Below are positions 583 to 41,504 of a DNA stretch of 64,000 bases, one piece after another. Made by a program: the position numbers and the translations under genes. The notes under the pieces were generated by a model. The model worked only from the letters and a program-made list of their open reading frames with translations, was not told the origin of the DNA and made no database searches. Each line of letters opens with the position of its first letter. The stretch's first letter is position 1. The DNA lies in IMG/VR virus record IMGVR_UViG_3300008954_003475, positions 62,001-126,000 of that record. One strand, given 5' to 3'.

Positions 583-3500
583 TTAATTCTCCAATTTCGT
601 TCCGAAGGTTTGAGGTCCTGGCTTGGCAGACTTGGCGCTTTCATCTCTATCGTCATCTCCATACTTGCCGGAAGCTCCTCCGCCACCGGAGTCGGACCCG
701 CTCTTAGGTACGAATAAAATAGTAAGTGTTCTATCTACCTTCATTAATTCACCTGGAGCAAAAAGCAACGAATCTGCTTCTGCATCGCCTGTGCTTTCCG
801 CATCTTCTATGCAATCTACATCGGAAGAGGCCGAAGCATCCTCAGACTCTCCTCTTGTATCAATTATGCCTGACTCTGTAACAGCCTGTATGATAACCGA
901 ACAAACGGTCCCTCTCATAACAACCTTGCCCGGAGAATCCGCCGTTACAGCCAATGTATATGTTGATTCGTCCTTATCTACCAAATCTTCTTCTCCGGCG
1001 ATAACCTCGATCCGTCTTGCCGAACCTGTGTCGTCCGTCAAAAAGTCTATTTTGATGCTATCGCTTAAATCAAGAGCTTGAGATATTTCTTCATCATAAC
1101 AATCTCTTGGTATAAGTTCAATAAGAACCTTTGATTCGGCCTCTGCAACGATCATATCTCCAACTCCAGAAGCATATTCCATAGCTCCCGTAATAGACGG
1201 GAAGCCTTCCATTTCATCAAAGTCTAATTCGTCAACAATATCGCTCTTAATCAAGGTTGCAAGATCTTTTTGCTCTGGATTTATATATTCCGTAAGCGGT
1301 GTTTCATCGTCATCTCCAAGCAGCTTAAACGTTGTATTCAATGGGTTAATAACAAACCTGCAAGTATCATCTATAGAATTCTCAACGCATGCCTTAAGAG
1401 CGTCATACTTCGTTATAATGAGCGGCATCGGAACGGGATTGAGGGCCAGCTTAAGCTCCCCTGTATCTTCATCCTCAACGGCTCCGATGGCAAGTTCGTG
1501 TCTTAACTTTGGAATAATCCCAAGAGGCACGCCATCGTCATCTAACTCTTCGCTCTTAAAGTGCTGAAGGAATTCCTGCAAACAATCTAATGTGGGGGTT
1601 ATTGCTATGTCTCCCAAGTCTTCTTCGAAGCCTGGAAGGTCCAAGAGAAGCTCCATCGGCCCCGAGGCACCGCAAGCTGATGCGATATCATCGGCAACCT
1701 GTCTAACGTCAACAATGTAAAGCCTTGGGAAGTCAAACACCTTGATTGAATCAAGAGAATTTCCAAGATCCTTTTGTTCTTTTCTGTGACCGCCGCCAAA
1801 ATCATATGCCCATCCAAGCTCTGGAAATGGCATTTTATGTGCATCTTCCCAAGAGACTTCAAGAGTGTCGTCTGCTACAGTCTCCATAACAAGGAAGGAG
1901 GAGGCTGTGGAGGTGGCTGCATCTCCGCTATTTGTCCAACTTATCTCATACCCTTCCACAAAGCCCTCCCCCGCATCTGTATCAGGCTCTCCAGATATCT
2001 CAAAGGCTGTCCACGCAGCCTCTAAGGCCGCCCCCTGTTTTGTCTTTGGCAAATATTCAGTACCAGATGGTGCCAAACCAGACAAGAAGCTTGCATTGGC
2101 TTGAGCTTTAATAACAAGCTCTCCATCAACGGGGTATTCTGCTACGCCGGAAGCAGTCGCAGCAGCTCCTGGGTCGCCGGATAATATAGTACTTTTTGGA
2201 TCAATATTTCTATAAACCTCTTGATCTTCCTTTCCAAATCTTTTCTTTGGAGCACTTGGATGATTAATCATCTTTGCGTTTATTGATTCAATCTCCCCAC
2301 TCTCAGTCACAATAATTCCACCGCCTGTATCTGTTTCTTCGACAAAATATACATTAAACTCATCATCAACAAGGGCAATCATTGGAATGTTTCCAAAAGT
2401 TTTAGTAACTGTAACTGGATTAAACTCAGCCACCATAGTCTCCTCATTAACACTAGCCTCTTGAAGTTCAATCTCTACAGTTAACGGCTTTGGCTGATAG
2501 CCGTCTCCAGACTTTGTTAAGAAAATACCCGTCTTTCCATCTATTGGGCTAATAAAATCAAAATCACTTCCATCCTCTCCCTCGCCGGAGCTACCGCCAC
2601 AAACATGTAATGAATCATCCGTACTTCTCAAAAACATCGGTGGAGAATCAAGAGTCTGTAACTCGCTTATAGTTTTCTTTCTAAAAAATAATGGGAACAA
2701 TAAGAAGAATGGCCACCACGAAACTATACTTGTTTTGCCCCTATCGTTGAATTGAAACTCCACAATTCTTGGATCTGGACCTGTAAATATTGCAAACTTT
2801 TTAACGCTTCTTGTAAAAGACAAGCCAAATGTTGCATTGAAATCACTGTCATCAAACTTCAAACCTGGATAATCAATATTGGGCATTTCCCCAGAGCCTT
2901 CGGAATCTCCTTCAAAGAACCCTCCTTCTATTACGAGCAAATTATCACCTGTAGCACTGTCTGTAAGGCCAGGCAACTCATTACCCGCATAACCACTGTT
3001 GCTAGATACAACAGCCGTACCTAGTTCATCAGATGAATCTATTAAAATATCACTAGGACATATACCGGCGGGATCATCACACCAGTCATCTCCATCGACA
3101 TCTCCATCGAGCAGATCCGGCGGCGTATTTCCCCAAGTTTTCACATTATCTACCGGCAAAGTTGTATAGGTCTGAGCCAATGGCAGTAGCGCATCGGGCT
3201 CAATTCTTCCTCTTGGAGCAACCTTGCCAAGTATCAATCCGGCAAGCTGCGATGGATCAATACAAGCCTCTTCGTCGTCATCCGCACCAATTTGACAAGG
3301 GAAGGAGAATACAAGCATCAACAGCTCCAAGAATAGCTTTAGAATCGTTATAATTGGCTCTAGAACCGATAGGTCAGCCTCAAGGCTGAACAGGTGCTCA
3401 TTTATGGCCTCCTCCAGCGCTACAATCGCCGGATAGTTCTTCTGCTCAATTGCGTTTACAAGAGCTGTTATGATTTCGTTTATAGCGTTGATGATGCTTA

Positions 3501-6500
3501 AGATCTTCAGAATCACGCAGAGCAGCAACTCCAGAAGGTGCAGTAATAATGCCAAGAACATAGCAGGAACAGAAAGCTGCGGCAATAACAATATAAGATC
3601 AAATAAGCACAAGAATAATCTAATTATTGCAAACACCAATCTTATCGGATGCAGTAAAGCACATATAACATCAATAATGCAGAAGATAACCTTGATTGGA
3701 ATCAAAAGAACTTTAAAGTTTCTAAGCTGAAGCGATAACTCTGCAGTCAAGTGGAAGGAGAGATCACAGAAACTTTGCAAAAACTCTTTTGCGATATTTG
3801 CCTTATCTAGCGTTACAGATGTAAACTTGAGGAAAAACATCTCAAGCTCTTCTTGCAGCTTGCCCGCAGGACCCGTCTTGTTTCTGTTTCCACCAAAAAT
3901 TTGGTCTGGCCATTTATCATCTAGATTTAAAGCAATATCATTGCCCATCTGACGCTTGAGCCTCATTCTATTTTCTTGAGAATTTGTAAGAGAAATGCTC
4001 ATACATTCACTCATTCCAAATACTGCAAAACTGCTCATATCCGGAATTGTGATTATCCAATTCATATAAATTCCGTCTGTAAACGGAGTTCCTTTTTTGG
4101 CCTTTACTCTCTTTCCAGCAACTTCAAATTTAGTATCCTTCTTTGTTCCAATTGTTCTTAAGTAAATATTGTCATCAGAATTGACAATCATTGTTGAAAA
4201 TATTTTTTTACCATATGATTTATATGGAAGCTTTTCATTCGGATCATTAATCCGAGCTTCTACAATTTCTGGAACATTAAACTTAATTGCAGCAACCTGC
4301 TCAAACCTAAAGGATAAAACCAATTTAAACTCATTCTCAAACTTATCTATTCCCGAAGATTGAATTGCCGCATCTTTATCTATAAAGACTTGATTAATAT
4401 TTACCTTTGTAAAATCATTTGGCCTTGGCCCCATTGACGAAGCCCTCTGCTCCACACCTTCTGCTATTTGATTAAGCATTTGGCCAGCACTTGATAATTG
4501 ATCTGAAAGCGTATTTAAAGCAGCAACCCCTGACGCTATTGCGTCAAGAACAGATTGGGCTCCGTCCATAACATCATCTACTGCACCTTGCGCAGTATCA
4601 AGAGCATTTGTAATGTCATCACCTATTGACGAAGAGTCAAGCCCTCCAGCCGCATCTGCTGCTGCACGAGCCTCCTCCAGAGCCTGCTCCTCAGCCTCTG
4701 CCGCGCTTAAGGCCTCATCTCCCAAAGATTCTTGTGCCGCTTCTTCTTTTGCAGCATACTCTGCTGCAGCTGTATCATAGTCTAATTGTAGCTCCTCGAA
4801 GGCGTCACCAGCTTCATCCATGGTTTCCTTGGCAGCATCAAGCTGCGCCTTCATCCCCTCCAGGGTTGCTGCAGCCTCTTCCTTTATCCTTTCATACATT
4901 GCGGCCATTTCAGATAAGCTTAAGGCAACCGTAGTTTGGCCATTCGTATCTATCGCAATAATCTCAACACCAGGCTTCCCCTCTTCATTTACTGGCGAAT
5001 CAGACAAAGACATGCCATATATGTCTCCACCATCTTCGGCTCCAAAAACCATATCTACACTTGGATATATTTTAATTGGATTAGCAAATTCATAATAAGC
5101 ATTTTCATTTGTAGATGGTTTGGTCCCAACCTCTTCGCCGCCCGGTCGCAAGGGATAACTTTCATTGGCAATTAATGGAAGTGGAGTTAAGCCTGCATTG
5201 CCTCCTGGGAAAATTATTGAAGACATACTCTCTTCGCCACTTGAGTCGGTAAACCTGCTAAGAGTTCCGGACAACATTGTTGTTGGTCGATCCTGACCTC
5301 TGGCCAAGACCGTTATATCCCCATCGTCCTTTACGGGGCTGCTGTCTACAACATCATCACTTATTCCACCATACCTTTCGTTAGAAAATGTAACAGTCGT
5401 TCTGTTATATAAAGTTGAATCATATGTTACATTGAAATATCTATCCTTTTTGCTTATGACTACATCTGTCCATCCCTCATCTTTAATGTTTCTTATATTT
5501 CTATAATTTGCGACAAGATATGAATTTTCAGCATACTTTATCCTTCCGGCTCTCGATGGCTTTAGTCTTTTTGACCCAATATATCCTTTATACATTTTGG
5601 ACATTCTGGCCTGCTTTGGACCGGTAAAGACTACAGACAAGCGGTCTAAACCATCTGATGTAATAATTGAAAATGGAGATATTCCAGAGCTATGACCACC
5701 TTGCGTTAGTTCGCTTAAATTATTATTTTTTATTTTTTTATTAAGCGTATTTGAATCACTATTGAGAATATCGAGAGGTATATTAGACTCAATTCTTGGC
5801 TTTCCACCTAAGGCTGATGGCAAAGTTGCAACAAACCCCAAGATATGTGGCGGAGTAATAAAGGGTCTAAGCTCAGATCCTGGCTTACTATCTTTGGCTC
5901 CCAGCGGAATAATCCCATAACTTTGATCAGAACTCGACAAAGCCTGAGGGCCGCCTGGCTCGTTGAGAGGCTCGTTAGTTATAAGAATATATGCTGGATA
6001 TTCCTTTTCTGATCCAACCAATTCAGTAAATCTGCTATAATTTAAAGATGCAGCCGCCGAGCCTGGAAAGTTTAAAATAGCTTTTCTTTTACTTATATAT
6101 TCAAAGTCTGAAGAACCAATTTCGTATCCAAATTTCATAGGAACATGAAAACTAGCTCCATTCGGACTTGCAACGGTAGCCATTTCTATCTCCGAAATAG
6201 TACCCCCGCTTCCCGTCCAGCCTATATCTTCTTCTAAAATATCAAGATTTTTACCACCAGTGTCATTCAAAATTGCTATATAAGCATAAAAGGTTCCTCC
6301 AAAAATTGGCTTTTTGGATTTAATTTTAATTTCTGCATTTTGACCATCCATAAGAAGTGGAATGGAATGAACAGCGTTTGTCTCACTTCTAAACTTTGGA
6401 ACAAAAAATCCATCTCTATCTGGGATTGGCGTAGGCGTAGGCGTAATGTCTGGCAATTCTATTTTGTCAGTACCTGGTGCTGCTACATAAATTTGAAACC

Positions 6501-8799
6501 CAGGAGAAGGATCAGTCGCGCCTTCTTCGGTCTGCGGCTGGGAGCATGTTCCGCTTGAAAGCTGTAAGCATACATAAAGCGTTCCCACATTAGATCCTAA
6601 GATATCAGACACAAGAGCTTCAGAGCGCACAGTTAAACTAGTTGATGATTGATTTGCAAAAATTACCGAATAATCACCAACGCTATCTCCGTCTTGAAAA
6701 GACCCTATTAAATTCTGCATTAATGGATCTGTATAAAAGTTAACCGAAACTACATCTGTCAAACCCTTCCCTGTAAAGGTTAATGCCTTGGTTCCATAAA
6801 AGCTAGCATCTGCGGAGAAAACCAGTTTATCATCAACAAAACCATTTGGCTTTATCTTGGTTAATGTGACTGCCTTTGGATATACTTCTATATTATTTCC
6901 TGGAACTCTTACAATTTGACCTATATCATCAACCACATAAAGAGCATATTCTGTTTTTTCTGACTCAGAATAAATATCCAACCCACTTGCAGCACCACTG
7001 GATGACCCGCTTGATGTATAAGGAATCTCAAGAACCCATTCATCGTCTGGAGCATCTTCGCTCTTTGTTTTTGTAAGCGGAATCCAAATAGGAGGAATCT
7101 GATCTTCAACACTTGTTAAAATATTTGGCCTATTAGAAGCAACAATATCTCTGGCCCCGATGGTTTTAGATTCGAAAAACTTTTCATCGTTTGTTTCGTC
7201 CGCAGGCATTCCATCTCTAAACCCGAGAAGAATATCAGGTCTATTTGCCTCACCCAAAACATCCGAAGTTCTATTCGCGCCCACCTTTGCAAGCGGAACG
7301 GACAGCGGAAATCCAAGATCTTGAAATCTATATCTATTAAATGCATTTATAAAAAAATACTGTTGCTCCAGACTGTCCTTTGCCGACTGAGAATAGGCTG
7401 TTAACATCTCTTTATTAAAAGCGGATACATCACCACTATTTATATAATCTAAAAGAACTTTATATACTGCCTGAAAATCTTCTTTCGATATATCATCAAC
7501 AGACACCACAGGGCTTGCAGAAGAATCTAAATACCCCTTTGTAAGAACCGGCGCTGTAAACATCTCTACAGCCTCCCAAGACTCCCTAAACCCCCTTACT
7601 CTGGGTGGCTTTTTCGGAGTTATAATTGGAGATAAAAAGAACTCATAAGACGCAGAGGCTTTGTCTGAATCTCTATTCGTATCATACAGCCCCTCTCTGC
7701 TAATCGCTATATAACCCTTATCTCCATATTCTGGATATGTTGTATCACCCGCCATTAACTCACAGGCCGGTGGCGCTTGATATTCAAAAGCTTCTGCAGC
7801 ATAATTATTTCCATTAAGAAATTCAAAACAAAATGTTATATACTCTTCCGAAGGCTCTCCTAGGTCGTACATATTTGTTGTGTATCCAGAGCTATCTCTT
7901 CCAGATAGGTCTGGCATTTTAATATATACCGAATCATCGTTGGCCGTATAATATCCTATATCTGATTTAAACAAATCTCCAAGGATATAATCTTCTTCTA
8001 TATGAAATATAGGAAATATATCAAGCAATATTTTGACGATACTATCATCTTCTATATCAATAACACCATCGGTTTCAGCCCCTACCCCGGTCAGGTACTG
8101 TGATAACGTTTCAAATGTCTCGCCGGAAATTCCAACGTAATTCTTTAGCCCAAACTCCTCATCTGCAGCATTAACCAAGATATCCAGCATATCTTTTAAT
8201 ACTTGCATCGGAATAAACTTAAATGTTCCAACCGTTTTTAGTCCAGATAATCTTATATTATCTTCAGCCAAAGGATCTAGCTTCTTCTGCAGGTCCGAAG
8301 CATCTTCTATGCTTTCTGAAATCATCCTTGTAAGCACAATAGATGGAACGTTACCTTCATGCCAACCATCTGTAATAGACGGCATGCTTTCTAATGATTT
8401 ATTTATTTTATTTCTAGCAGTTACAAGGCTGGCTACTCGCGGAAATTCACTCGAAGTATCAACCCCCGGTGTAATAGCGCTTATATGAGCCTTTAATCTT
8501 CCAAGTCTATATTTATTAAGCTTTTTGCTATACGTAGCTTTTGTTGTGTTTATTTTCTTATCGGACTGTAAAGATATCTTTACAATTGATCCTCCAATTA
8601 ATGGAATTTTTTCTTTATCTTTTGCAGCATCAGGAAATAAAATTTCCATATCTTTAATCTTAAGATTAGAACGCCCAGAGGATGCCGTGGACGAATCATT
8701 ATCCTCTGGATTGCAATTTACGTATATTTTTGAAAATTCTTCTTGAAGATTAATATCGCCAACTAATAGCGGAAGAATCTTAGATACATTATCACCCAT
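583..8799 (-). CDS. Giant baseplate/tail-tip-associated protein (2738 aa) with IPT/Ig-like segments, an acidic coiled coil and a hydrophobic helical block
   Basis: Long ORF directly after the spike gene. IPT/TIG-like segment (VTLTKIKP...LTFTGKGLTDVVSVNF), PTPTP linker, Ala/Glu heptad region and a ~140-aa Leu/Ile/Phe-rich block. Function inferred from synteny. Confidence 0.6.
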   Translation of the reverse strand: MGDNVSKILPLLVGDINLQEEFSKIYVNCNPEDNDSSTASSGRSNLKIKDMEILFPDAAKDKEKIPLIGGSIVKISLQSDKKINTTKATYSKKLNKYRLGRLKAHISAITPGVDTSSEFPRVASLVTARNKINKSLESMPSITDGWHEGNVPSIVLTRMISESIEDASDLQKKLDPLAEDNIRLSGLKTVGTFKFIPMQVLKDMLDILVNAADEEFGLKNYVGISGETFETLSQYLTGVGAETDGVIDIEDDSIVKILLDIFPIFHIEEDYILGDLFKSDIGYYTANDDSVYIKMPDLSGRDSSGYTTNMYDLGEPSEEYITFCFEFLNGNNYAAEAFEYQAPPACELMAGDTTYPEYGDKGYIAISREGLYDTNRDSDKASASYEFFLSPIITPKKPPRVRGFRESWEAVEMFTAPVLTKGYLDSSASPVVSVDDISKEDFQAVYKVLLDYINSGDVSAFNKEMLTAYSQSAKDSLEQQYFFINAFNRYRFQDLGFPLSVPLAKVGANRTSDVLGEANRPDILLGFRDGMPADETNDEKFFESKTIGARDIVASNRPNILTSVEDQIPPIWIPLTKTKSEDAPDDEWVLEIPYTSSGSSSGAASGLDIYSESEKTEYALYVVDDIGQIVRVPGNNIEVYPKAVTLTKIKPNGFVDDKLVFSADASFYGTKALTFTGKGLTDVVSVNFYTDPLMQNLIGSFQDGDSVGDYSVIFANQSSTSLTVRSEALVSDILGSNVGTLYVCLQLSSGTCSQPQTEEGATDPSPGFQIYVAAPGTDKIELPDITPTPTPIPDRDGFFVPKFRSETNAVHSIPLLMDGQNAEIKIKSKKPIFGGTFYAYIAILNDTGGKNLDILEEDIGWTGSGGTISEIEMATVASPNGASFHVPMKFGYEIGSSDFEYISKRKAILNFPGSAAASLNYSRFTELVGSEKEYPAYILITNEPLNEPGGPQALSSSDQSYGIIPLGAKDSKPGSELRPFITPPHILGFVATLPSALGGKPRIESNIPLDILNSDSNTLNKKIKNNNLSELTQGGHSSGISPFSIITSDGLDRLSVVFTGPKQARMSKMYKGYIGSKRLKPSRAGRIKYAENSYLVANYRNIRNIKDEGWTDVVISKKDRYFNVTYDSTLYNRTTVTFSNERYGGISDDVVDSSPVKDDGDITVLARGQDRPTTMLSGTLSRFTDSSGEESMSSIIFPGGNAGLTPLPLIANESYPLRPGGEEVGTKPSTNENAYYEFANPIKIYPSVDMVFGAEDGGDIYGMSLSDSPVNEEGKPGVEIIAIDTNGQTTVALSLSEMAAMYERIKEEAAATLEGMKAQLDAAKETMDEAGDAFEELQLDYDTAAAEYAAKEEAAQESLGDEALSAAEAEEQALEEARAAADAAGGLDSSSIGDDITNALDTAQGAVDDVMDGAQSVLDAIASGVAALNTLSDQLSSAGQMLNQIAEGVEQRASSMGPRPNDFTKVNINQVFIDKDAAIQSSGIDKFENEFKLVLSFRFEQVAAIKFNVPEIVEARINDPNEKLPYKSYGKKIFSTMIVNSDDNIYLRTIGTKKDTKFEVAGKRVKAKKGTPFTDGIYMNWIITIPDMSSFAVFGMSECMSISLTNSQENRMRLKRQMGNDIALNLDDKWPDQIFGGNRNKTGPAGKLQEELEMFFLKFTSVTLDKANIAKEFLQSFCDLSFHLTAELSLQLRNFKVLLIPIKVIFCIIDVICALLHPIRLVFAIIRLFLCLFDLILLLPQLSVPAMFLALLLHLLELLLCVILKILSIINAINEIITALVNAIEQKNYPAIVALEEAINEHLFSLEADLSVLEPIITILKLFLELLMLVFSFPCQIGADDDEEACIDPSQLAGLILGKVAPRGRIEPDALLPLAQTYTTLPVDNVKTWGNTPPDLLDGDVDGDDWCDDPAGICPSDILIDSSDELGTAVVSSNSGYAGNELPGLTDSATGDNLLVIEGGFFEGDSEGSGEMPNIDYPGLKFDDSDFNATFGLSFTRSVKKFAIFTGPDPRIVEFQFNDRGKTSIVSWWPFFLLFPLFFRKKTISELQTLDSPPMFLRSTDDSLHVCGGSSGEGEDGSDFDFISPIDGKTGIFLTKSGDGYQPKPLTVEIELQEASVNEETMVAEFNPVTVTKTFGNIPMIALVDDEFNVYFVEETDTGGGIIVTESGEIESINAKMINHPSAPKKRFGKEDQEVYRNIDPKSTILSGDPGAAATASGVAEYPVDGELVIKAQANASFLSGLAPSGTEYLPKTKQGAALEAAWTAFEISGEPDTDAGEGFVEGYEISWTNSGDAATSTASSFLVMETVADDTLEVSWEDAHKMPFPELGWAYDFGGGHRKEQKDLGNSLDSIKVFDFPRLYIVDVRQVADDIASACGASGPMELLLDLPGFEEDLGDIAITPTLDCLQEFLQHFKSEELDDDGVPLGIIPKLRHELAIGAVEDEDTGELKLALNPVPMPLIITKYDALKACVENSIDDTCRFVINPLNTTFKLLGDDDETPLTEYINPEQKDLATLIKSDIVDELDFDEMEGFPSITGAMEYASGVGDMIVAEAESKVLIELIPRDCYDEEISQALDLSDSIKIDFLTDDTGSARRIEVIAGEEDLVDKDESTYTLAVTADSPGKVVMRGTVCSVIIQAVTESGIIDTRGESEDASASSDVDCIEDAESTGDAEADSLLFAPGELMKVDRTLTILFVPKSGSDSGGGGASGKYGDDDRDESAKSAKPGPQTFGTKLEN

Positions 8800-8899: not shown

Positions 8900-11344
8900 C
8901 TATTCACTATCTGCTAAATCTGCCAACAAATCTGTGATGCACTGAATTTTCTTACCAACCTCTTCAGCCGCATCTAAAGGATTTGTCTTTGGCGAAGCAG
9001 CCGGATCATCAGAACATGGAGCTTTGTGCGTTTCTCTTGGCGGCCTGTTTGCCTGCCTTACCTCTATTCCGTTTCCTGCAAGAATAAGCTTTGCCGTACT
9101 CTCTAAGCATAAATTTCCATCATTTCTAATAATCATTGGCGCTCCGGGCTTCATCCCAGCTATAACCAAGCCTGCCTCACTTATGGAAATAATATAATCC
9201 GAAGCATGATTTCCATCTTCGGCCGCCCATCCTTCTTGTCCGCAATATCCTTTATCTGTCATATTTACTCTTAATTCAAACCTGCCTTCGCTAAAGTTAT
9301 CGCCCGTTCTGCCTCCAACATTAAGCAGGAAATCTCCATCGGTCTGAACGACCACGCTTCGACCCTCTGAATCTGTACCAAACCAAGCAACCAAGGCCCC
9401 TGCTGTATCTAAAACGATACTTTTACCGTCTTGATTATCGGCCCCGACAGAGGTCTCTATTGATCCTTCGAAATTTAAATTAGCACTTTTTCCTCCAGAC
9501 TCCTTTCTCGTGCCTTCGCCTTTGTCGGCACTCTCAGTGGCTAGTTCTTCGCTAATAGAGAATGAATTTGTATATGGAACATTGGTTTCTCCCGCGCCGC
9601 CGGAAAAACTTTTGCCAGCAACGAGAACCTCTCCGCCTGGATCCATAGCGGGTGGACCCGGATTAATCTCCACTGTGGACATAAATGTTACATCATTAGC
9701 GTCTGAGCCGTCTGCGTTTGGATCTTTAGACTTTCTCTCAAAGGACTGTCCAAGAGAATTCCCCAAAACAATACCTGGGCATGCAGTTACCGAGGTCGGA
9801 ATATGAACACATTTTATTAAATTTCCAATAAGCATTTCTGCTGCAGCATACATGTTATGATACTTTGTAGAGTTAACACGCACCTTTGTGCCGCCTGATG
9901 AATCAATTATATTTTTTAAATTATGAAAATAACCATCTTCATTCGTATGTCTAACCCCGGTTTGTCTTGTATATTTAACATCCTCCTCTGTATCTGCAAA
10001 CATAGCTTCTCTAGCAGCAGCTGTAGGATATATTTCCGTACCTTCTTCATTGCGCAGCGTAACAGGAATCTTTTCTGAAACACTCTCTGACGATGGCTTG
10101 CTTAAAGTTCCGCCCGAAGTTCTGTAGAATAAGGCATCAGTAGGGTATAAAACATTGCCAGTGTTTGATGACTTTGGAACATTTAATTTTAAAATACCCT
10201 CTTTATCAATTGCACAAATAAAGTTATCATTATCATTTGAGGTTGCTTCAGATAAAGAATTTGTAGATAACTGAAAATGATAACCAATCCCTCTTCTGCT
10301 TATTAATCTAGCAGATTCATAATCTTTATCAGAAACTTCAGACGGAATTAGACCATTATCATCTCCTGTTTTTACAACTCCATAATTTGGATCTAAAACT
10401 TCTCCCCTATGATTTACAACATTACCACCTATAATCTCTATCAATTGATGTGGAGCCAAATGTAATGCATTTCTACTTCCAATGGCCTTTATATCACTCT
10501 CCCTTTCATATATGCTAGGCACAGAAGATGCTCGATTAACGACCTCTTGATCATACCCTATGTACCCTGAATGTTCAGAAAGCTCATTAATAACAAGTCT
10601 ATATTCTGATATTGGAGGATTTCTCATTAACTCATTTGAGGCAATATTAAGAGCCCCACGGCCAGGCCAAATACCTCTAGATTTACCATCCGTATTCTTA
10701 GGATACATCAAAACCTGATGTCCACAGGGAACTGCTGCACTAGCAGAGTTGCTTTGCGGATCAAACCTTATTGCATCACCAGAGACTAAACGACTACCTG
10801 TACTGACGGATTGAATTGTATGCCCAACGGTTGATACTTTTGTTTCAGTTCCGCGCAAACTTATATATAATCCACTTTTTTGATCATTTCCTAAATATAT
10901 ATTATTATCTGTACAAGAGCCTTCCAAAAGTAACTGCCCGCCGCCAAACGCCGCCAACTTCATGTCGTTTGTATTCATGGCCGCTATAGGATAATCCGTA
11001 GTAGCTGTCGGAACAAAATCGCCTGGCTCGACCCCCTGGCGGCCCTTCCAGCCGGGTGCCCGGTCGCTATTCGGCTTTGGGATAACCTTTAAAGCCTGAA
11101 TAGTGCCTCGACTTCCTGGATGCACTCTAATGCAAAGAACTCTATCTCCTTTGTTTGGATGCCTAAATAGCCCCGAATCTCTTACTCCACCATAATAAAG
11201 AGGCGGAATTACAAAGCTGGTCCCAGTATCTTGAGAGCCCTTATGAACCGTAAGCTCTCCAGTCTTTTTGTTAACATCCAAAACAACTGCTTCAAATGGC
11301 CAAAACGATGTTATCTGTCCGGCAATATCTGAATTTCCACTCAC
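8900..11344 (-). CDS. Baseplate central spike (gp5/gpV-like: N-terminal OB fold, C-terminal beta-helix)
   Basis: N-terminal FVIPPLYYGG...LFRHPNKGDRVLCI resembles the gpV/gp5 OB-fold signature. C-terminal short beta-strand repeats (SIVLDTAGALVAWFG..SVVVQTDGDFLLNVGG). Follows the hub gene. Confidence 0.7.
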   Translation of the reverse strand: MSGNSDIAGQITSFWPFEAVVLDVNKKTGELTVHKGSQDTGTSFVIPPLYYGGVRDSGLFRHPNKGDRVLCIRVHPGSRGTIQALKVIPKPNSDRAPGWKGRQGVEPGDFVPTATTDYPIAAMNTNDMKLAAFGGGQLLLEGSCTDNNIYLGNDQKSGLYISLRGTETKVSTVGHTIQSVSTGSRLVSGDAIRFDPQSNSASAAVPCGHQVLMYPKNTDGKSRGIWPGRGALNIASNELMRNPPISEYRLVINELSEHSGYIGYDQEVVNRASSVPSIYERESDIKAIGSRNALHLAPHQLIEIIGGNVVNHRGEVLDPNYGVVKTGDDNGLIPSEVSDKDYESARLISRRGIGYHFQLSTNSLSEATSNDNDNFICAIDKEGILKLNVPKSSNTGNVLYPTDALFYRTSGGTLSKPSSESVSEKIPVTLRNEEGTEIYPTAAAREAMFADTEEDVKYTRQTGVRHTNEDGYFHNLKNIIDSSGGTKVRVNSTKYHNMYAAAEMLIGNLIKCVHIPTSVTACPGIVLGNSLGQSFERKSKDPNADGSDANDVTFMSTVEINPGPPAMDPGGEVLVAGKSFSGGAGETNVPYTNSFSISEELATESADKGEGTRKESGGKSANLNFEGSIETSVGADNQDGKSIVLDTAGALVAWFGTDSEGRSVVVQTDGDFLLNVGGRTGDNFSEGRFELRVNMTDKGYCGQEGWAAEDGNHASDYIISISEAGLVIAGMKPGAPMIIRNDGNLCLESTAKLILAGNGIEVRQANRPPRETHKAPCSDDPAASPKTNPLDAAEEVGKKIQCITDLLADLADSE

Positions 11345-11363: not shown

Positions 11364-14300
11364 TTAACTTAATACGCTATTTGGTATGTCTATAATACCA
11401 ACTTCAATAACATTTATTTCACCTGTAAAATTAAACCCACTTATTTCATCTCTGAAGTCTAACCAGCTGTTTTGTTTGGGCCCGCCTTTTGGAAAAATAC
11501 CCAAGGCTTTATTGCTGCTGATATCTCCGGAAAGATCAGAAGTAAATACACCCAATAGCTTTCTATCCATGCATTTTATCTCACCAAGAGGATTCGTATC
11601 ATCCTCTCTTGTAAGATATGATATCTGCTCTATAATCTTTGTAGAATTTATCGGAGTTACTGGCATATTGTTTGGCAACTTCATAGATGTAAGCTCTTTT
11701 GTAGTACCCGTTGATCCGCCACCAAAAAGAGAACCAACACTTGTCATTGCCTGACTTATTCCATCCACAAGGTCATCGCCTCCAGAGTATGCATGATCTT
11801 GAGCTACTTGGCTCGGATTCTCCAAAAGAGATCTGACTATTGCCATCTTTTCGCTAACATTTTGAATCGCCTCTGTATCGTCTGGATCTTTTACGAATCC
11901 TCTAACTAAAACATATCTAGTTCCCATCATTGAGCCTGATAGGTCCATCATCATATTTGTAAATCTTATTTGATTATCTTTATAATCTAACAGCTCTGCC
12001 ATACCAGCGCCTCCAGTTGGAAATACAAGTGTCGAATCTGGCTTCAACACTCTGTAACTATCATCTGTTGATTCCGTTCTATACATCAGAGCAGGATCCT
12101 CAAGGAAGTTGGAAACAAGATCCTGTCCAATAATATCTAGCGGGCTTGGCAAATACTCTCCGGGAGGATGGCCGTAAATTAAAGAAAGGCTTGTCGTAAA
12201 ACTTTGTCCACTATATGAAAAGCTATGGTTAACAGATCTAACATAATAAAGCAATCCCTTTGCCGGAACATACACCGTATCTCCTGGCTGATAAAATTCA
12301 TTTCCAGGTACAGAAATTTCTCCTCTATTTATATTCATTTTTTGTAACAATAATTCTAATATCGCATATGGCCTCGCCTGCCCTTCGGCATCACTTATAA
12401 AAGGAACATTTATTGGACCACCTGACTTATAGCCATACTGTCTCCAAAGATCAAAGTCTGTTGCTCCAGCCCAAAAATACAAGCCATCTGTTCCAGAGTT
12501 TAAATTGGCCCCCATTCCTAGTGGCGCATCACCCTGCACATCCACTCGACAAAAGTCTGGTGGATTTTCTGTAAAGGTAGCAGATAGAATATATTCATCT
12601 TTCAATATATATCTCTTTCCTGATCCATATCCTAAAAAGTTTCTTGTATCATCTTCTATGAGATGATCAAAGACAGAACCCTCATTTGCATCTCCAGTTA
12701 TAATATCAATAGCATTTTGAGTGCTTTCTGCTAAATTCTCAAGAAACTCAACCCCATCTCCAGATATTATTCCATCTGCAACATCTATCTCATCAGAATC
12801 TTCGCCAGACTCAAGAATTCCCGAAATCTCCTCTAACTCTTCTTGTTTTGACAAGTTTGCTTGCAACATAGAAACATAACTATCTCTTTGAGATATAGCT
12901 TTTTTAATTTTATCCAAAATTCCATTGTTTCCTGTAACCACACTGTCAATATCTTCTTCATCCATAAAGAATATTAAATCTTTATTCTTAAAACCTTCTT
13001 TTTTGTCAATGCCTATGCCTTGAGCGGGATCTCTTCCGAATTGCTTCTTAAAAGTATTTCTTATGCCATTTAGGTTGTCAATTGTTGCCAGGTGTTGCGC
13101 TGGAGGCCTTATCGTATTGCCGGTGCCAGAACTGCCTGCTGCTGTCATTATATCGTTAACAATACCAGCCTCTTCTTGAAAGATTGGATCAAAAATACCC
13201 AAAAGAGTCTCTGTGTCTCCAGATAAAATATCTCCATTTTCCTGAAAAGCAGCCGTAACCTTTAGCCCATCTCCGAACAACGAATTATTACTCTCTGTTA
13301 TATCTCCAGCAGTTCCTTCAAACTCTCTCTGCTTAAGCTGCAAGCCTCCAGTTTGTGGAGAGTTGGCTCCAAAGAAATTTGCAATATCCCCAAACACTCC
13401 GCCGGCAACGGGGGCTTGAACTCCAAAGAAATCTAATGAATCTGGACCAGATAGCTGCATATTTGGAATTATCGTATGATCTGGATACCTTCCCATCATA
13501 AGGCATAATAATACAATCTTTACATTCAAAGTGTGTACCGATAAATATAATCCTTCAATTCTTGTTGAAAAAAGATTGGTTATAAACCCTGGCATAATAT
13601 CTCTGCCAGTTTCCTCCTGCGTTCTTATAACTTCCTTTAAAATAGAAAGGGGTGTTCGATTCCAAAGAGGAGGTCTAAACTCTAAATGACCCTGACTGTT
13701 GCAAAAGAATTCCAGGTGCAAATACCTAGCTGCCTCATCACATTTTTGATAAGTATCAACAAAGGTTCCTTTAAATAATGGAAAACTTCCATTATTTAAT
13801 GATAAAATAAATGGTTTAATATCAGCACTATCATACTGATCTGATACAACAAATAAATTCCTATCCCTATTCAGCCTAACATCTTCAATTCTTCTTTGCG
13901 CCCCAATCAGCCTCATTGCTCTATTTATATCATGATTTTCCTCTTCATCATCATCCAGCGGAAGGCCGGAGCTTGGACCAAACAAGCTTATTTCAATGCC
14001 AACATCGTCGGCCGAAGTTAATGCACTATTAAACTGAGTTCCAACCCTTATCTGTTCTTGAATCGCAGCATCAATTGTATCAATTTCAGCCTGCAATGTG
14101 GCAACCAAAGCGGCTGCCGGAATTCCCGTCTGAACCCCGCTTCCAGCGTTTTTTTGAAGACTTCTCATCTTCTTTCTAAGTTTCACCTTTCTCTTTTGCA
14201 AATTTTTAACCTGATTATTAGCCGTAGATCGAACCCCAGCCTGATTAATCATCTGTTCTGCCGCAGAAGAGCTAACTGACGCCATTCTATATGGGTGAAA

Positions 14301-16697
14301 ATTTCCATAATATTCATTTTGCTCTCTTACCGCCTCCACAACACCTGTTAGTGGATCTTCTGGGCTAAAGTTTGTAGAACGATCACTCTTATTGTGCGCC
14401 GCGAGAGATTGCTCTATAAATGTTTCTACATCATATGGCTGCCCAACAATCAAAATGCTTAAAATATTTGGAATATCAAGATTATTTAAAACATCATTTG
14501 TAGCTGTAACAGAATAATTTTGATCAAATTGTGAAGACATCTGGCTCTCTCCGGTTGGATCTACAATTTGAAATCCAGCCGTGGCCGTGATAACTCCGGT
14601 CTTCCACCTGTATACAAAACCATCCGGATGTTGCATTACCTTCTTTCCATCTAAAGAACCAGGTCCATTGTATTGGCTTTGAAGAAGATTTCCCTCTGTA
14701 GCGTTTTGTCCGGCTAATATCCCAGAATCATAGCTAAGCAAGCCTGATGATAATAAATTTTTATTTTCATACAGCAATTCTCTTTCAGAGCCTATAACCT
14801 GTCCTAATTCATCTTTCGCCAATTCAAACGGAGTCAGCGGATCTTCCAAGATTCCCTGAGGATCGGCCATCGCTGGTTTTATAGCAAACCTACTCCACTT
14901 TAGCCAAGACATATTATCTGTGCATGAAACATTCAAAGTCCAATAACCTCCTGAAAAATTTTCAGAAGTATTTGTAATATACCCTCCGAACACATGAATC
15001 ATTCCAAATGAATTATCCTGCATATGCCTTAATTTTTTATAAGTTTCAATATCCATTCTTTGATTTGTATATAATTGATACTCTGCCTTTAAAACTGCAG
15101 TGTCAATTTCCATAAAACCTGTATCAAAAGGTGCTTCGCTAGCCTCCTCTGGGTATAGTGACCCTCCTAATGTATAATCTGTATATGTTCTATTTCCACG
15201 AATATAAAAATGAACAGGATCTGGCGGACTCACAATTGGCTTTCCAAGATAAAAGGTTCTAAGCCTCTCTCTTACATATTCCATGTCTAAAGAAGAATCT
15301 GCAGACCCCGCGCCACCGAGCTCCATAGCGGCAGATACAATGGATGACCCATCTATCGGAGGCATACTTCCGGCCATACCCTCAGATTGCATTCCACCGT
15401 TTACTAATTCATCAAGAATTCCAACCGTTCCATTCAAAGCCTCTTCTATTGCAAGCTCTATATCATCCTCTAAAATGGTTCCAAGCCTATATGGATAAGT
15501 CATTGCGAAACTGGCAGTCCCAGGAGCAGTCTCATAGTTGGTTGAAGTTTGAAAACTATTAAAAATTGTAAGCTCAATGACCCCAGTTCCTGGCCCTATT
15601 ATATAATTGGCCGGATCGTGCGGATCAACTATCCATGTTGTTAATTGATTATCAGTAGAAAATGCATTCCTTTTAAGCACCTTTGCTATATCTTCATTCA
15701 TAGCACTATATTGCTCAACAGAAGATCCATAAGCAAAGGCATCCCCTATATCGCTAAACATGGTGTCCCAACTAAAGCTGAGATCTGCATCTGCATCTGC
15801 TCCACTTATAGCGGAAGCGTGACCATCTACACCTTCGTATTCATTTTTAAACTCTTCTTTTTTGCCTTCAAGAATCAACTTTGCAGTAGAGGCTGGCAGT
15901 GTATCTAAATAAGTTCTATTTGTATCTAAAGTAACACTCAAATAAGCTTCAATCTCTTCTCCTCTTTCATCAGTCAATAAGTTTCCATCCTCATCTCTAA
16001 GAAAAAGATCAGTAGTTGGCGCAGCGTCTGAACCTGGAGGGGCTACCGAAGATCTAGACTCAGCCAGTTGTTCATCACTTGCGTATATATACTGACCAGT
16101 GGCTGTATCATAGTATGCAGAGCCACCTTCGAGGCCCAAATTGTCCCCCCTAAGCTCAGAAAGCCACTCCTCAAGTCTTTTTGCAACATATTCTTCAGAA
16201 GTATATCCAAGTTTGTTTATATCGAATAAAGCTCCTTCGTTTATAAAAGAAGACAGCAAGTTCATACTGTACATCTTATTATCAGAAAGAAAATTTTCAA
16301 ACTTTGTTAAGCTCTCATATGCTCTTATCTGCTGAACTTTATAAGCAAACAATGCCTTAGTTGCTCTTAAAAGCATTTTTTCAGTTTTGTCCATAAACCT
16401 TAAATCATTAGCGCTTTTTAATGAAGAAAATGGCTTTTTCTTTATTAAAATTGTTGCCTCAGGAGACATCGCCAACAAGTTTCTGGTATCAGGAGTTACA
16501 GAGTTTGCATGATTTTGGTCTAAGAATATAGAAGCACCCGTGCCAACAAGCGAAGGCGGCGGGTTCTCTATAGATCCATAATCAACATGTATAGGGACTG
16601 CTCCCTGAGATATCTTTGTTCTTGCCTCATTCAAAACCTCTTTGATGCGAACATCCAACTCTGGAGTTAAACTCGGACTGGGCGCACTACCTGCCAT
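11364..16697 (-). CDS. Baseplate hub protein (gp27/gpD/Mu gp44-like), enlarged, 1777 aa
   Basis: C-terminal RGEISVPGNEFYQPGDTVYV..LLYYVRSVNHSFSY.GQSFTTSLSL is the typical hub fold end. Also FFCNSQGHLEFRPP. Lies between the tube initiator and the spike. Confidence 0.75.
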   Translation of the reverse strand: MAGSAPSPSLTPELDVRIKEVLNEARTKISQGAVPIHVDYGSIENPPPSLVGTGASIFLDQNHANSVTPDTRNLLAMSPEATILIKKKPFSSLKSANDLRFMDKTEKMLLRATKALFAYKVQQIRAYESLTKFENFLSDNKMYSMNLLSSFINEGALFDINKLGYTSEEYVAKRLEEWLSELRGDNLGLEGGSAYYDTATGQYIYASDEQLAESRSSVAPPGSDAAPTTDLFLRDEDGNLLTDERGEEIEAYLSVTLDTNRTYLDTLPASTAKLILEGKKEEFKNEYEGVDGHASAISGADADADLSFSWDTMFSDIGDAFAYGSSVEQYSAMNEDIAKVLKRNAFSTDNQLTTWIVDPHDPANYIIGPGTGVIELTIFNSFQTSTNYETAPGTASFAMTYPYRLGTILEDDIELAIEEALNGTVGILDELVNGGMQSEGMAGSMPPIDGSSIVSAAMELGGAGSADSSLDMEYVRERLRTFYLGKPIVSPPDPVHFYIRGNRTYTDYTLGGSLYPEEASEAPFDTGFMEIDTAVLKAEYQLYTNQRMDIETYKKLRHMQDNSFGMIHVFGGYITNTSENFSGGYWTLNVSCTDNMSWLKWSRFAIKPAMADPQGILEDPLTPFELAKDELGQVIGSERELLYENKNLLSSGLLSYDSGILAGQNATEGNLLQSQYNGPGSLDGKKVMQHPDGFVYRWKTGVITATAGFQIVDPTGESQMSSQFDQNYSVTATNDVLNNLDIPNILSILIVGQPYDVETFIEQSLAAHNKSDRSTNFSPEDPLTGVVEAVREQNEYYGNFHPYRMASVSSSAAEQMINQAGVRSTANNQVKNLQKRKVKLRKKMRSLQKNAGSGVQTGIPAAALVATLQAEIDTIDAAIQEQIRVGTQFNSALTSADDVGIEISLFGPSSGLPLDDDEEENHDINRAMRLIGAQRRIEDVRLNRDRNLFVVSDQYDSADIKPFILSLNNGSFPLFKGTFVDTYQKCDEAARYLHLEFFCNSQGHLEFRPPLWNRTPLSILKEVIRTQEETGRDIMPGFITNLFSTRIEGLYLSVHTLNVKIVLLCLMMGRYPDHTIIPNMQLSGPDSLDFFGVQAPVAGGVFGDIANFFGANSPQTGGLQLKQREFEGTAGDITESNNSLFGDGLKVTAAFQENGDILSGDTETLLGIFDPIFQEEAGIVNDIMTAAGSSGTGNTIRPPAQHLATIDNLNGIRNTFKKQFGRDPAQGIGIDKKEGFKNKDLIFFMDEEDIDSVVTGNNGILDKIKKAISQRDSYVSMLQANLSKQEELEEISGILESGEDSDEIDVADGIISGDGVEFLENLAESTQNAIDIITGDANEGSVFDHLIEDDTRNFLGYGSGKRYILKDEYILSATFTENPPDFCRVDVQGDAPLGMGANLNSGTDGLYFWAGATDFDLWRQYGYKSGGPINVPFISDAEGQARPYAILELLLQKMNINRGEISVPGNEFYQPGDTVYVPAKGLLYYVRSVNHSFSYSGQSFTTSLSLIYGHPPGEYLPSPLDIIGQDLVSNFLEDPALMYRTESTDDSYRVLKPDSTLVFPTGGAGMAELLDYKDNQIRFTNMMMDLSGSMMGTRYVLVRGFVKDPDDTEAIQNVSEKMAIVRSLLENPSQVAQDHAYSGGDDLVDGISQAMTSVGSLFGGGSTGTTKELTSMKLPNNMPVTPINSTKIIEQISYLTREDDTNPLGEIKCMDRKLLGVFTSDLSGDISSNKALGIFPKGGPKQNSWLDFRDEISGFNFTGEINVIEVGIIDIPNSVLS

Positions 16698-20872: not shown

Positions 20873-21508
20873 TCAACTATAAGCTGCCGAAATAAGACCC
20901 GGGAAGTCCAAGGGACCTCTGCGGTCGCCCATATCCGCAGCCTGCTCAACTGCATCCACATCGATCTTGGAGGCATCGACCTCTCTGCTGCCACCCACGC
21001 CTTGGCTGTTTGCAACCGGCTCGTGTGCTCGCTTGGAAGATATGAATTCACAATCAATACCAGCAGATTCTGCAATAGTATAATCAGAAGTTTGATAAGT
21101 CTTTGATAAATTATTGAACCAGCAATTATGATAAGTCGTTATAACCGCATCATCACCGTCTCCTGTAAACTTATCAATAACCACTATATCAAACGGCATT
21201 CTTTGAGCATGAATATTCTTAAAGCCTCTGGCAAAAGATTCAGGCAAAGATAAGCCATCAAATACAATTCTGTTAACCTGCAAAGAGAACTTTGCCGGAG
21301 ACTGAGGAACTAACTCTATTATGCCATCAGTTCCAACTTCCGAAATAGGCTTGTTAGATCTTGACTGAGTTTCTTGAAAAGACTGGATCGCGCCGACTGG
21401 CTCGCCATTGACATAAACAATAACCTGCGTTGATAGACCGGTTCTAGTCTTTGCGCCTGTAATTGTAGCGCTATCAAATAAAGTTGATGTATTTGGATAA
21501 TCTGCCAT
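20873..21508 (-). CDS. Tail tube protein
   Basis: VYVNGEPVGAIQSFQETQSRSNKPISEVGTDGIIELVP...FSLQVNRIVF...PFDI...TYHNCWF is a myovirus tube pattern. Directly after the sheath gene. Confidence 0.88.
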   Translation of the reverse strand: MADYPNTSTLFDSATITGAKTRTGLSTQVIVYVNGEPVGAIQSFQETQSRSNKPISEVGTDGIIELVPQSPAKFSLQVNRIVFDGLSLPESFARGFKNIHAQRMPFDIVVIDKFTGDGDDAVITTYHNCWFNNLSKTYQTSDYTIAESAGIDCEFISSKRAHEPVANSQGVGGSREVDASKIDVDAVEQAADMGDRRGPLDFPGLISAAYS

Positions 21509-24500: not shown

Positions 24501-24763
24501 CGAAGCTCTGTTCTTCCGCTAACGACAGGAATGTTTTGAAGCTCAAAAAAGCGCCCATCACCGCTACCGGTGGGGCTGCAATCTGCCGCTCCATCCTCTC
24601 CGCCGCCTGCTGCGGCCTGAACAATGGTCTCCTCCCTGAGGCCTTCGCCCATAACACAAACTATTCTTATTCCGCCTGGGATAGAGACCCCACGGGAAAG
24701 AACCCTATCTCTTGCAAATGCTCCAGGCTGAATGAAACCTGAAATGCCGGGTATATTAGCCAT
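21521..24763 (-). CDS. Contractile tail sheath protein (1080 aa, with insertions)
   Basis: N-terminal PGAFARD..S. C-terminal sheath core (ERVAFIG...LTYKTLSGF...GRTTSQSG..EDEEISIIFIRD...VEQDKVDPRQINVFLQFSPAYPINYIFIDIEV). Confidence 0.92.
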   Translation of the reverse strand: MANIPGISGFIQPGAFARDRVLSRGVSIPGGIRIVCVMGEGLREETIVQAAAGGGEDGAADCSPTGSGDGRFFELQNIPVVSGRTELRLNGTLLFGKEDEIDANGFDSAFDFRLDPATGCIELQGASIGDQDGKGYSAASMNIGTGTIIEDASCDPFITLDVLDDSAPAERWTVRCVSVVRDSNGDPIPGLATFSVTGSESGQIYDSAGSPMAFHSSYYTSGDGAISGTSDECTDGFVVAYGDVSGLAFPQGSATLKSGDETESTTDTFVVAGADIVTQGQAMAGDFLCIDGYAGYEIEDLEYDGTDTTITLTTDSLGPADWTDMDWEIRATNLLIDDEDVLHNTTTGAPTTEGSFTSGDVGKTVVMCAGTNSNGGRYTVSAITSTRRLRLHALDDESTGLPDLEGTGGLSDTGLTFHMLENNGILLLGIEEGAVPFEVGDKFYIDVNSRALALGDNLEAKYVFEGDLNDPEFFTGANSLFTKHGNPSEDNTLSLGSQMAMENGAPAILALQCKPAIPRRTTATLLEERDSLGVGGFPDCGSGCEVDDLRFVISRPITGLRNGRPDADSRVNIFIVRDGEETQVFPNKVDFYNSQLESDIQQYNWIGSSDNAFSYTVVNIDEDIVGNGIEGEIAEDDDGFYFTTPEFDFDGEHVGMTIVVTSMENAGEAWDSRTALTSKEQVSGALGLDNDGVDEVELTISAVTDDSKAYVVRASDGEAITLAAEYEDINFFIKDPSSTPDDACLLLHEDLVTSGVLQDGDGLKISYVDENDSDYFDTNWFNALEALEAADAQIIVPLPTQAISSIFRATVNHCENMSSVANRMERVAFIGAQMGVSAAALIGTEEVAVEDIGILEGIQGDDPEEVLDDNVEDLVNFKLSDNYTSNRCVYMFPDTIVRNVNGTNVNLHGFYMAAAASGWLSARQNVALPLTYKTLSGFALTRDKIFRPVILNGLGNVGATVVEPVTGGGKVLAGRTTSQSGFVEDEEISIIFIRDTVKRVLRNSLKGFIGGVQSGDTNNLVGARVSSIMSALIAQGLVTQYKNVRVEQDKVDPRQINVFLQFSPAYPINYIFIDIEVGVI

Positions 24764-40871: not shown

Positions 40872-41504
40872 ATGGCACTTATACTTTTAAATCCAGGACT
40901 AAGACCATTGGGGCAGTTTGACTTTGCTGACGATGATGCATCCAAAGTAACTGGTGGCGAAATAGCAAAAATTGTAACATATACTTCATCAACTGAGAAG
41001 GCGGCTCCAGATGTAACTGGCAATCAAGACCTGGTACACTTCCAGCTTGATTCATTTTCAGATGGAAGACTTTGCGGATTAGTAGACGAAGGAACTTCCT
41101 CGGAAGAAGATTCTACTCCTGGATATGGAACTTTGATGGGACAAGCAATAGGGGTAACTACCACCATGGTCGCCGGATCAACTATTATGGGCCCATCAAC
41201 TGTTTATAGCTCAGGAAAGGCCACAATCTGGCATCAAGCTGGACTTTATGGAATCACAGAGGAGGCTTTTGTCTCTGGACAGCCAGCTGCAGCTTTTGGG
41301 GCCGGTATTAACACCAGTTTGTTCGGAACAGCAACTGGCGGAGCAACCGCCGGAAAACTAACCACAGTAAGCACAGGCAATGAGGCCGCTTGGTGGCTAA
41401 GCAGAGAATCAGGATCTTCGCTCGTATCAACCACCAACTCCCAGGCCGGGCTTACCGCCGCTACAGAATATCACATAATATATTTCCCCGGACCAACCAA
41501 ATAG
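40872..41504 (+). CDS. Capsid decoration protein paralogue
   Basis: Colinear with the gene upstream of the MCP: MAL.LLNPGLRPLG.FD, GL.DEG, YGTL.G..IG, SGK.T.WHQ.GLYG, SSLVST. Confidence 0.7.
   Translation: MALILLNPGLRPLGQFDFADDDASKVTGGEIAKIVTYTSSTEKAAPDVTGNQDLVHFQLDSFSDGRLCGLVDEGTSSEEDSTPGYGTLMGQAIGVTTTMVAGSTIMGPSTVYSSGKATIWHQAGLYGITEEAFVSGQPAAAFGAGINTSLFGTATGGATAGKLTTVSTGNEAAWWLSRESGSSLVSTTNSQAGLTAATEYHIIYFPGPTK

Follow-up and report, generated by a model that had tools for sequence, protein, structure and literature searches.

An undescribed family of strongly conserved hydrophobic domains in a predicted baseplate gene slot of uncultured marine myophages

The DNA analysed here (the window, 64,000 nucleotides) comprises bases 62001-126000 of the linear IMG/VR virus record IMGVR_UViG_3300008954_003475 (221,878 bp, estimated to be 66% complete), which derives from an uncultured marine jumbo phage. 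One of its genes, at 583-8799, encodes a protein of 2738 amino acids (aa), known from genes in metagenomic DNA alone, that contains a new, undescribed domain family of ~190 aa. Judged from sequence, this family appears to be a strongly conserved hydrophobic module in a conserved baseplate slot of uncultured marine myophages; we describe its gene order, domain anatomy, conservation and hydrophobicity, and the absence of matches to known families. The best explanation is that the protein (hereafter the target) is a structural baseplate component of this myophage clade, and it would then be present in the virion. We propose, with a probability of roughly 40%, that the hydrophobic domain (the block) is a membrane-insertion module that resides in the baseplate, is shielded in the virion and is deployed after contraction. 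An earlier sequence-only reading of this DNA, which had named the open reading frame (ORF) as a candidate spike-borne translocator, was right about its extent; the frame lies on the minus strand and is uninterrupted.

Kyte-Doolittle averages over 19 residues (KD19) exceed 1.6 across aa 1694-1839, that is nucleotides 3283-3720, and the hydrophobic run seen by the sequence-only reading lies at this place, the peptide it quoted included. The KD19 peak of the block, 2.78, is the maximum of the whole record (all ORFs of at least 120 aa in 221,878 bp). A crude insertion energy was obtained by adding up the Hessa biological hydrophobicity values of every 19-residue stretch. Among the tail-module proteins scanned, only the target had negative 19-mers by this measure, namely aa 1721-1739 (-1.4) and aa 1746-1764 (-2.0), and the short homologues described below behave in the same way. 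The five modelled helices span aa 1677-1716, 1718-1738, 1740-1785, 1789-1811 and 1813-1830, and those of ~18-21 residues are bounded by invariant prolines. In the alignment columns of giant and short homologues together, helix 2 carries a single polar stripe with a period of seven residues (K/N1703, D/E1710, N1717) and helix 3 a similar one (K1720, R1727, D1734). Almost every column of aa 1741-1759, which follow the invariant P1740, is apolar in the short family, and further out, at aa ~1760-1811, both long helices take on an ordinary amphipathic character in their distal halves. On the basis of these column statistics and the crude insertion energies, the block consists of a central membrane-competent hairpin, two more apolar helices of ~20 residues, and an amphipathic hairpin of ~45 residues per arm. 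All giant-family members share seven cysteines (1678, 1707, 1713, 1731, 1761, 1835 and 1846), and C1713, L1728, P1740 and C1835 are invariant across the giant and short families.

A word-indexed search returned 48 close homologues, mostly of 2000-3000 aa and 28-55% identical, many along the entire protein. Their contigs, of up to ~400 kb, were assembled from marine and other metagenomes, and none is informatively named. In the alignment of these 48 sequences, column identity to the target reaches 0.84 at aa 1701-1750 and 0.67-0.70 in three neighbouring 50-residue windows, and is 0.15-0.45 over most of the remaining protein. The block is the conservation maximum of the target; an Ala-rich helix N-terminal to it is the least conserved part, with many gaps. 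Fourteen cysteines are invariant or nearly so, all in the C-terminal half, and half of them lie in or adjoin the block. When the block alone was used for an exhaustive profile search of 1.84 billion cluster representatives, 237 proteins were found, all metagenomic: the giants, some forms of intermediate length (~1500-1600 aa), and many short proteins (620-850 aa) in which the block occupies approximately residues 60-250. The ORF and its block are therefore far more than a product of chance, given the 48 close homologues, the 237 representatives and the position of the block as the conservation maximum. When a profile of the short family was compared with one of the giants' C-terminal half, only the block aligned (probability 99.7%, E 6e-26). 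Two short homologues found on contigs occupy the slot exactly as in the window (spike, short protein, ~555 aa, 142-143 aa, ~1100-1350 aa), with the 142-143-aa gene at the position of the gp25-like gene and the ~1100-1350-aa gene at that of the gpJ-like gene; the spike and the downstream protein beside them are weakly homologous to their window counterparts. Since only the block aligns and the short forms keep the same gene slot, the conserved unit appears to be the block with its gene neighbourhood. The sequence-only reading had instead taken the coiled coil and the block as a unit; this pairing is not conserved, the coiled coil being the least conserved part and having no counterpart region in the 620-850-aa homologues.

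Searches of the whole target against Pfam and PDB sequences gave no family match, and PHROG gave only a single sub-threshold match, outside the block. PDB profile searches with the C-terminal half and with the N-terminal half of the giant family gave no match, and an Atlas feature search with aa 1500-2200 returned nothing informative. The target and two short homologues had no tblastn match in 50,697 phage records, which include INPHARED isolates. Among 185,579 species genomes the block matched once, on a 2.6-kb contig (CAYWDY010000350.1, 2661 bp) of an uncultured Flavobacteriales metagenome-assembled genome (MAG), which is at most a weak hint at the host, perhaps one of the marine Bacteroidota. 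Flavobacteriia hosts have been predicted for one large aquatic phage lineage (PMC12619734, 2025).

Two AlphaFold2 (AF2) models were obtained. The first covers aa 1539-2738 (47 sequences, mean predicted local distance difference test score, pLDDT, of 70) and contains the five block helices, a confident beta-rich region, an alpha/beta region and a C-terminal immunoglobulin (Ig)-like domain. In VIA comparisons, its long block helices align together with helices at aa ~2365-2484, as one compact bundle, to designed and natural bundles (Z 9-10). The second model, of the block alone, was built from 77 sequences of both families and has a mean pLDDT of 80.7, rising to 95-98 at aa 1700-1739 and 1770-1799. 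Model 1 matched only Ig-like domains and generic helices in PDB, BFVD, AFDB and Atlas; for model 2 the best Foldseek E values were 1.3 (PDB) and 0.23 (AFDB clusters). A VIA scan of model 2 against ~48,000 PDB cluster representatives gave only matches to the long hairpin (Z 8.0-9.8, 50 matches listed), and by the tool's own warning a Z below ~13 is generic for helical folds. The best of these is T7 gp14 (7ey7_A, Z 9.8, 97 of 102 residues), again in the generic range; this entry shows gp14 in its post-ejection, pore-forming conformation (PMC8954989). Chains of colicin, Bcl-2, gp6, gp7, TssF or TssG were not among the 50 VIA matches listed, of which the lowest had Z 8.0. A match of the short helices to TM1-3 of complex I ND6 (Z ~8) was discarded as generic; helices 1 and 2 are fused in the second model, and the match did not recur with it. 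A gp6/gp7-like match, which the sequence-only reading had named as pointing to an ordinary baseplate wedge, did not appear in fold or profile searches, and a separate gpJ/gp6-like gene lies downstream. Because the fold searches gave only generic hairpins, they neither identified the target as a wedge nor established a resemblance to a pore-former. Complex prediction with three copies of the spike C-terminus, the C-terminus of the 692-aa neighbour and the block scored 0.00 and gave no answer; controls were not run, and the result is used neither way.

The sheath and tube genes place the target gene in a contractile-tail module. Searched by Atlas features and predicted structure, the 814-aa ORF that precedes it fell into the Phage_base_V, Gp5_OB and Mu Gp45_N clusters, and is thus predicted to be the central spike, as the sequence-only reading had assumed. 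It follows from this identity that the target gene comes after the spike gene and before the conserved wedge genes; from gene order alone, the target may be borne on the spike. Conservation of the spike-then-target arrangement, a check that the sequence-only reading had suggested, was found, the tail-module gene order being kept in four other metagenomic loci. The order around two giant homologues inspected on their contigs is identical to that in the window. As had also been noted, a PAAR-like gene is lacking: the PAAR motif PF05488 has no match anywhere in the record (66% complete by estimate) and none in the target by Pfam. The idea that the target itself fills the PAAR-like tip role did not hold up, as a protein of 2738 aa that has folded domains before and after the block is far too large and looks like a baseplate component. 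The C-terminus of the spike (window 8900-9060, minus) contains an amphipathic helix with Cys (…KKIQCITDLLADLADSE). It was considered as a docking partner and rejected; the helix is present in locus L006, not in L005, L007 and L008, and is not clade-conserved. In the short-family phage of L007, a 117-aa ORF without Pfam match (L007:9643-9996, plus strand) lies between the spike and the block-bearing gene and could be a tip protein.

By its position, length conservation and composition, and not by family match, the 690-aa ORF behind the tube gene is a candidate tape measure; its Ala/Gly-rich composition was read in the window copy only. The KD19 maxima of the tape-measure candidates are 1.11-1.48 (window and the three related loci with a complete gene; 1.48 in the window copy), so that the candidates of this clade have no transmembrane-like segment. 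The target homologues of all five loci have maxima of 2.60-2.98. For comparison, the hydrophobic block of the P2 tape measure gpT reaches 2.49 at aa 533-616. For P2, and likewise for T4, it has been proposed that transmembrane helices of the tape measure form the inner-membrane conduit (preprint 10.64898/2026.09.14.750843, 2026). The 692-aa neighbour downstream co-occurs with the target in all five loci and has no family match. It carries one conserved hydrophobic helix near its C-terminus (KD19 1.69-2.77; aa 600-630 in the copy of this record), preceded by a conserved motif, G-x3-G-[IV]-G-x-[IV]-D, and may be a partner of the block.

We infer membrane insertion, channel formation and a shielding mechanism along the following lines. 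In the virion, the block would be kept soluble by packing against the target's own C-terminal helices, and probably also by oligomerization and by the co-conserved 692-aa neighbour with its own hydrophobic helix. Sheath contraction would push the spike through the envelope and expose the block, which could then insert into the host membrane and help to anchor the tail or to open a DNA conduit. The same job has been proposed in P2 and T4 for tape-measure transmembrane helices, which are absent from the candidates of this clade. Peripheral or adhesive decoration would be the part of the variable N-terminal domains and of the invasin-type Ig domain at the C-terminus. A bolder version, which we regard as unlikely but worth stating, is that the penetration function has moved from the tape measure into a dedicated, metastable, Cys-locked domain of four to five helices within a baseplate protein beside the spike; following contraction, this domain would refold into the host membrane like a viral fusion protein or T7 gp14 and form or nucleate the DNA-entry channel with the helix of the 692-aa neighbour.

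Several observations speak for a baseplate-resident insertion module: the highest hydrophobicity of the record, negative insertion energies, Pro-bounded helices and narrow polar stripes; the block as the only part detectably common, at profile level, to giant and short forms; tape-measure candidates without a transmembrane segment, the hydrophobic helix of the neighbour, and a Trp-rich, Lys-flanked loop in many members; and a spike gene directly before the target with no PAAR, no gp6/gp7-like fold, and the pore form of T7 gp14 as the best match (at a generic Z). Others weigh against it. The helices are nearly invariant on every face, as one would expect of packed protein interfaces more than of surfaces exposed to lipid, and the block sits in the middle of 2738 aa with large folded regions on both sides. 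The conserved cysteines could lock the fold by disulfides or metal. The joint alignment with the C-terminal helices as one compact bundle implies that, in the model, the amphipathic hairpin of the block packs on these helices. A specific structural match to any pore-former was not found with Foldseek or VIA, and the sequence relation of T7 gp14 to the block has an hhalign probability of only 0.05, for which homology was rejected. In phage G, whose gpJ-like protein is the closest among isolates, the tape measure is not hydrophobic and a baseplate protein of this kind is also missing; because of this the tape-measure contrast is suggestive but not general.

The main rival is a permanently buried core bundle without any membrane role, which we consider only slightly less probable than the insertion module. 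The block would then be an oligomerization and attachment module that fixes the target to the hub, the spike, the 692-aa protein or the wedge, with the flanking Ig-like domains as adhesin-like decorations. Such an anchor would account for a block that is extremely conserved on all faces while its flanks vary, as is usual in tail fibres and baseplate proteins, and for its being the only domain detectably common to short and giant forms, both of which keep the same neighbours. The predicted packing of the hairpin on the C-terminal helices points the same way, and the C-terminal invasin-type Ig domains hint that the remainder of the protein is exposed and serves adhesion. However, KD19 values of 2.8-3.0 and the near-wholly apolar stretch of the short family (equivalents of aa 1741-1759) exceed what is usual in soluble bundles, no known baseplate core fold matches, and in a monomer two amphipathic helices should be unable to shield about four apolar ones. 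Improbable, in our view, is an anchor that acts during assembly, in which the apolar helices insert from inside into the cytoplasmic membrane of the infected cell and either tether the nascent baseplate or make the target a non-virion membrane protein. In the classical description of T4, the baseplate hub is assembled in association with the membrane; here, the hydrophobicity is of transmembrane grade without a signal peptide, and an even number of apolar helices would leave both flanks on the same side. Yet the gene is strictly syntenic among virion baseplate genes, the large Ig-like domains are typical of virion surfaces, and no sign was seen of the step that would have to free a tethered baseplate.

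It is very improbable that the target is the tape measure or a spike-carried cargo effector in the style of a type VI secretion system (T6SS). Coiled coils and hydrophobic helices are often combined in tape measure proteins such as P2 gpT, and the hydrophobic stretch of one short homologue has a weak match to a tape-measure PHROG (E 1.6e-4). However, the tape-measure slot is held by the 690-aa Ala/Gly-rich ORF, with the target four genes further on, and the many folded domains of the target, beta-rich and Ig-like C-terminal of the block in the AF2 model, could not lie in a tube lumen. In T6SS clusters, genes after VgrG often encode cargo, but neither the target nor its neighbours contain PAAR, Rhs or toxin domains, and the family occurs on phage-like contigs only, bar the one MAG contig mentioned above. 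We therefore rejected both identities.

Table 1. Features of the target protein and of the surrounding tail module. Positions are those of the window unless marked otherwise.
Feature	Position	Strand	Remarks
Target ORF	583..8799	minus	2738 aa; ATG start; internal stops absent; conserved giant baseplate-module protein
N-terminal region, aa 1-1290	4930..8799	minus	moderately conserved, 20-40% column identity
Acidic Ala-rich proline-free stretch, aa ~1291-1440	4480..4929	minus	column occupancy 0.61-0.68, identity 0.15-0.16
Hydrophobic Cys/Pro-punctuated helical domain (block), aa ~1669-1846	3262..3795	minus	ultra-conserved
Helix-PQLSVP-helix hairpin, aa 1719-1764	3508..3645	minus	most apolar part of block
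Beta-rich region after block, aa ~1848-2198	2206..3258	minus	conserved; AF2 pLDDT ~90
Trp/Phe-rich loop WWPFFLLFPLFFRKK then RKK, aa 2028-2042	2674..2718	minus	variable insertion in beta domain
Alpha/beta region, aa ~2351-2482	1354..1749	minus	conserved; invariant Cys 2376, 2406, 2471, 2480
C-terminal invasin/intimin-type Ig-like domain, aa ~2483-2699	703..1353	minus	VIA-align match
Gly/Ser-rich tail, aa 2700-2738	586..702	minus	ends in conserved peptide ...PQTFGTKLEN
Tail sheath	21521-24763	minus	phrog_2839 and phrog_279
Tail tube-like virion protein	20873-21508	minus	phrog_985
Two small ORFs, 165 aa and 108 aa	after tube	minus	between tube and 690-aa ORF
Tape-measure candidate, 690 aa	17741-19813	minus	position after tube and two small ORFs; Ala/Gly-rich helical composition
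Related tape-measure candidates	L005:160-2001; L008:134-2179		sizes across clade 613-696 aa; copies in L006 and L007 truncated by the locus end
341-aa ORF	after 690-aa ORF	minus	weak tube-initiator match
1777-aa ORF	11364-16697	minus	after 341-aa ORF, before spike; without family match
Predicted central spike, 814 aa	8900-11344	minus	gpV/gp5/Mu gp45-like N-terminus; C-terminus beta-helix-like by sequence reading
692-aa downstream neighbour	1-579 (first 193 codons) and genome 60501-62000 (L003:4501-6579)	minus	
gp25-like sheath initiator, 143 aa	beyond window, after 692-aa ORF	minus	phrog_2669, E 2.7e-13
Baseplate_J/gpJ/gp6-like protein, 1108 aa	beyond window	minus	PF04865, E 1e-21
3319-aa protein, C-terminal LamG domain	genome 46676-56635 (L002:4676-14635)	minus	follows gpJ-like gene
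1533-aa ORF	beyond window, after 3319-aa gene	minus	

The N-terminal region of the target (Table 1) probably consists of beta-rich add-on domains; it has no counterpart in the 620-850-aa homologues, whose block begins at about residue 60. The acidic, Ala-rich stretch that the sequence-only reading had described as a coiled coil is present close to where it was expected, at about nucleotides 4480-4929. Its composition (27 Ala, 28 Asp plus Glu and 0 Pro in aa 1301-1400) fits a helix, and by composition only it is a predicted coiled coil. It also accounts for the sole Pfam, PHROG or PDB matches of the target, a sub-threshold phrog_20425 and a weak kinesin stalk. Fold searches with the 1200-residue model found no match for the beta-rich region behind the block. 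The second, shorter hydrophobic patch that had been pointed out is likewise real and corresponds to the loop WWPFFLLFPLFFRKK within this region; in close relatives this WWPFF loop is rich in W and precedes basic residues, whereas distant ones have lost it. In several close relatives (e.g. ...AWWTWWLIFPIFFSKK) the loop is a Trp-rich stretch with Lys flanks and resembles an interfacial membrane-binding segment. The C-terminal domain superimposes on invasin (1cwv, Z 11.3, rmsd 1.7 Å over 97 aa) and FdeC (4e9l, Z 10.6), and a Big_1/invasin-type domain likewise forms the end of the short proteins (PDB profile search: 4e9l with E 3.2e-8; also 1cwv). Of the IPT/Ig-like segments claimed for the target, the invasin-type Ig domain at the C-terminus is thus supported, and the IPT family PF01833 is carried by two homologues; the target itself has no Pfam match.

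Elsewhere in the module, the 3319-aa gene that follows the gpJ-like gene may be the equivalent of gp7/gpI. The structural region holds other giant ORFs without family matches, of 1970 aa (30104-36016, minus) and 1207 aa (26471-30094, minus). A 755-aa ORF at window 61472-63739 (minus) carries a DUF192 domain (PF02643, aa 242-339, E 2.8e-18), which is unusual for a phage structural region. Small islands of plus-strand genes interrupt the otherwise minus-strand window at 40872-43298 and 48688-50560, and a 594-aa protein from one of them matches tail-fibre PHROGs (phrog_9942, E 1.6e-11).

The wider issue is how contractile-tailed phages pass their DNA across the inner membrane, for which transmembrane helices of the tape measure are the current proposal. 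The clade is widespread in marine metagenomes, with contigs of up to ~400 kb. If the block is membrane-active, it would represent a second solution to the penetration problem, and if the Cys-locked refolding scheme were true, a novel type of penetration device in phages. As a static core, it would be a new and unusually hydrophobic baseplate anchor fold. In both cases the domain family, with its 237 cluster representatives, is undescribed and forms a compact unit of ~190 aa.

Among known systems, the wedge proteins T4 gp6/gp7, P2 gpJ/gpI and TssF/TssG resemble the target in having a helical bundle within a large baseplate protein with peripheral add-on domains. However, their role is filled here by the separate PF04865 gene and the 3319-aa gene, so that a gp7-like identity of the target was rejected; the target has no Pfam or fold match, and its block is far more hydrophobic than an amphipathic bundle, by general expectation rather than from measured wedge proteins. 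The likeness to invasin, intimin and FdeC Big_1 domains concerns aa 2483-2699 only, a peripheral domain that is uninformative about the block. The sequence-only reading had seen in the target the architecture of colicin pore domains and the translocators IpaB and YopB. At the sequence level a resemblance stands, an apolar hairpin (aa 1719-1764) amid amphipathic helices in a domain of ~190 aa, but there is no sequence similarity and the coiled coil beside the block is not conserved. A specific fold match did not emerge either: the ten-helix globin-like bundle of the colicin type is not matched (Foldseek E 1.3/0.23; 50 listed VIA matches), and IpaB (5wkq_B) aligns with Z 8.8 and an rmsd of 7.5 over 131 aa, inside the range of generic hairpins. 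From the tape measure proteins, to which it has no sequence similarity, the block differs in being far more conserved than its surroundings and in its invariant Cys and Pro residues. P2 gpT, and by proposal the T4 protein, shares with the target a cluster of transmembrane-grade helices in a tail protein (KD19 2.49, compared with 2.78 in the target); unlike that of gpT, the block belongs to another gene, outside the tape-measure slot, and is flanked by large folded beta domains. T7 gp14 is a free internal capsid protein that forms an outer-membrane pore and is far less hydrophobic (KD19 maximum 1.31), whereas the block is a domain within a baseplate protein. Both are helical modules of ~190-200 aa, and gp14 is kept soluble by a partner in the virion and refolds to a hexameric channel.

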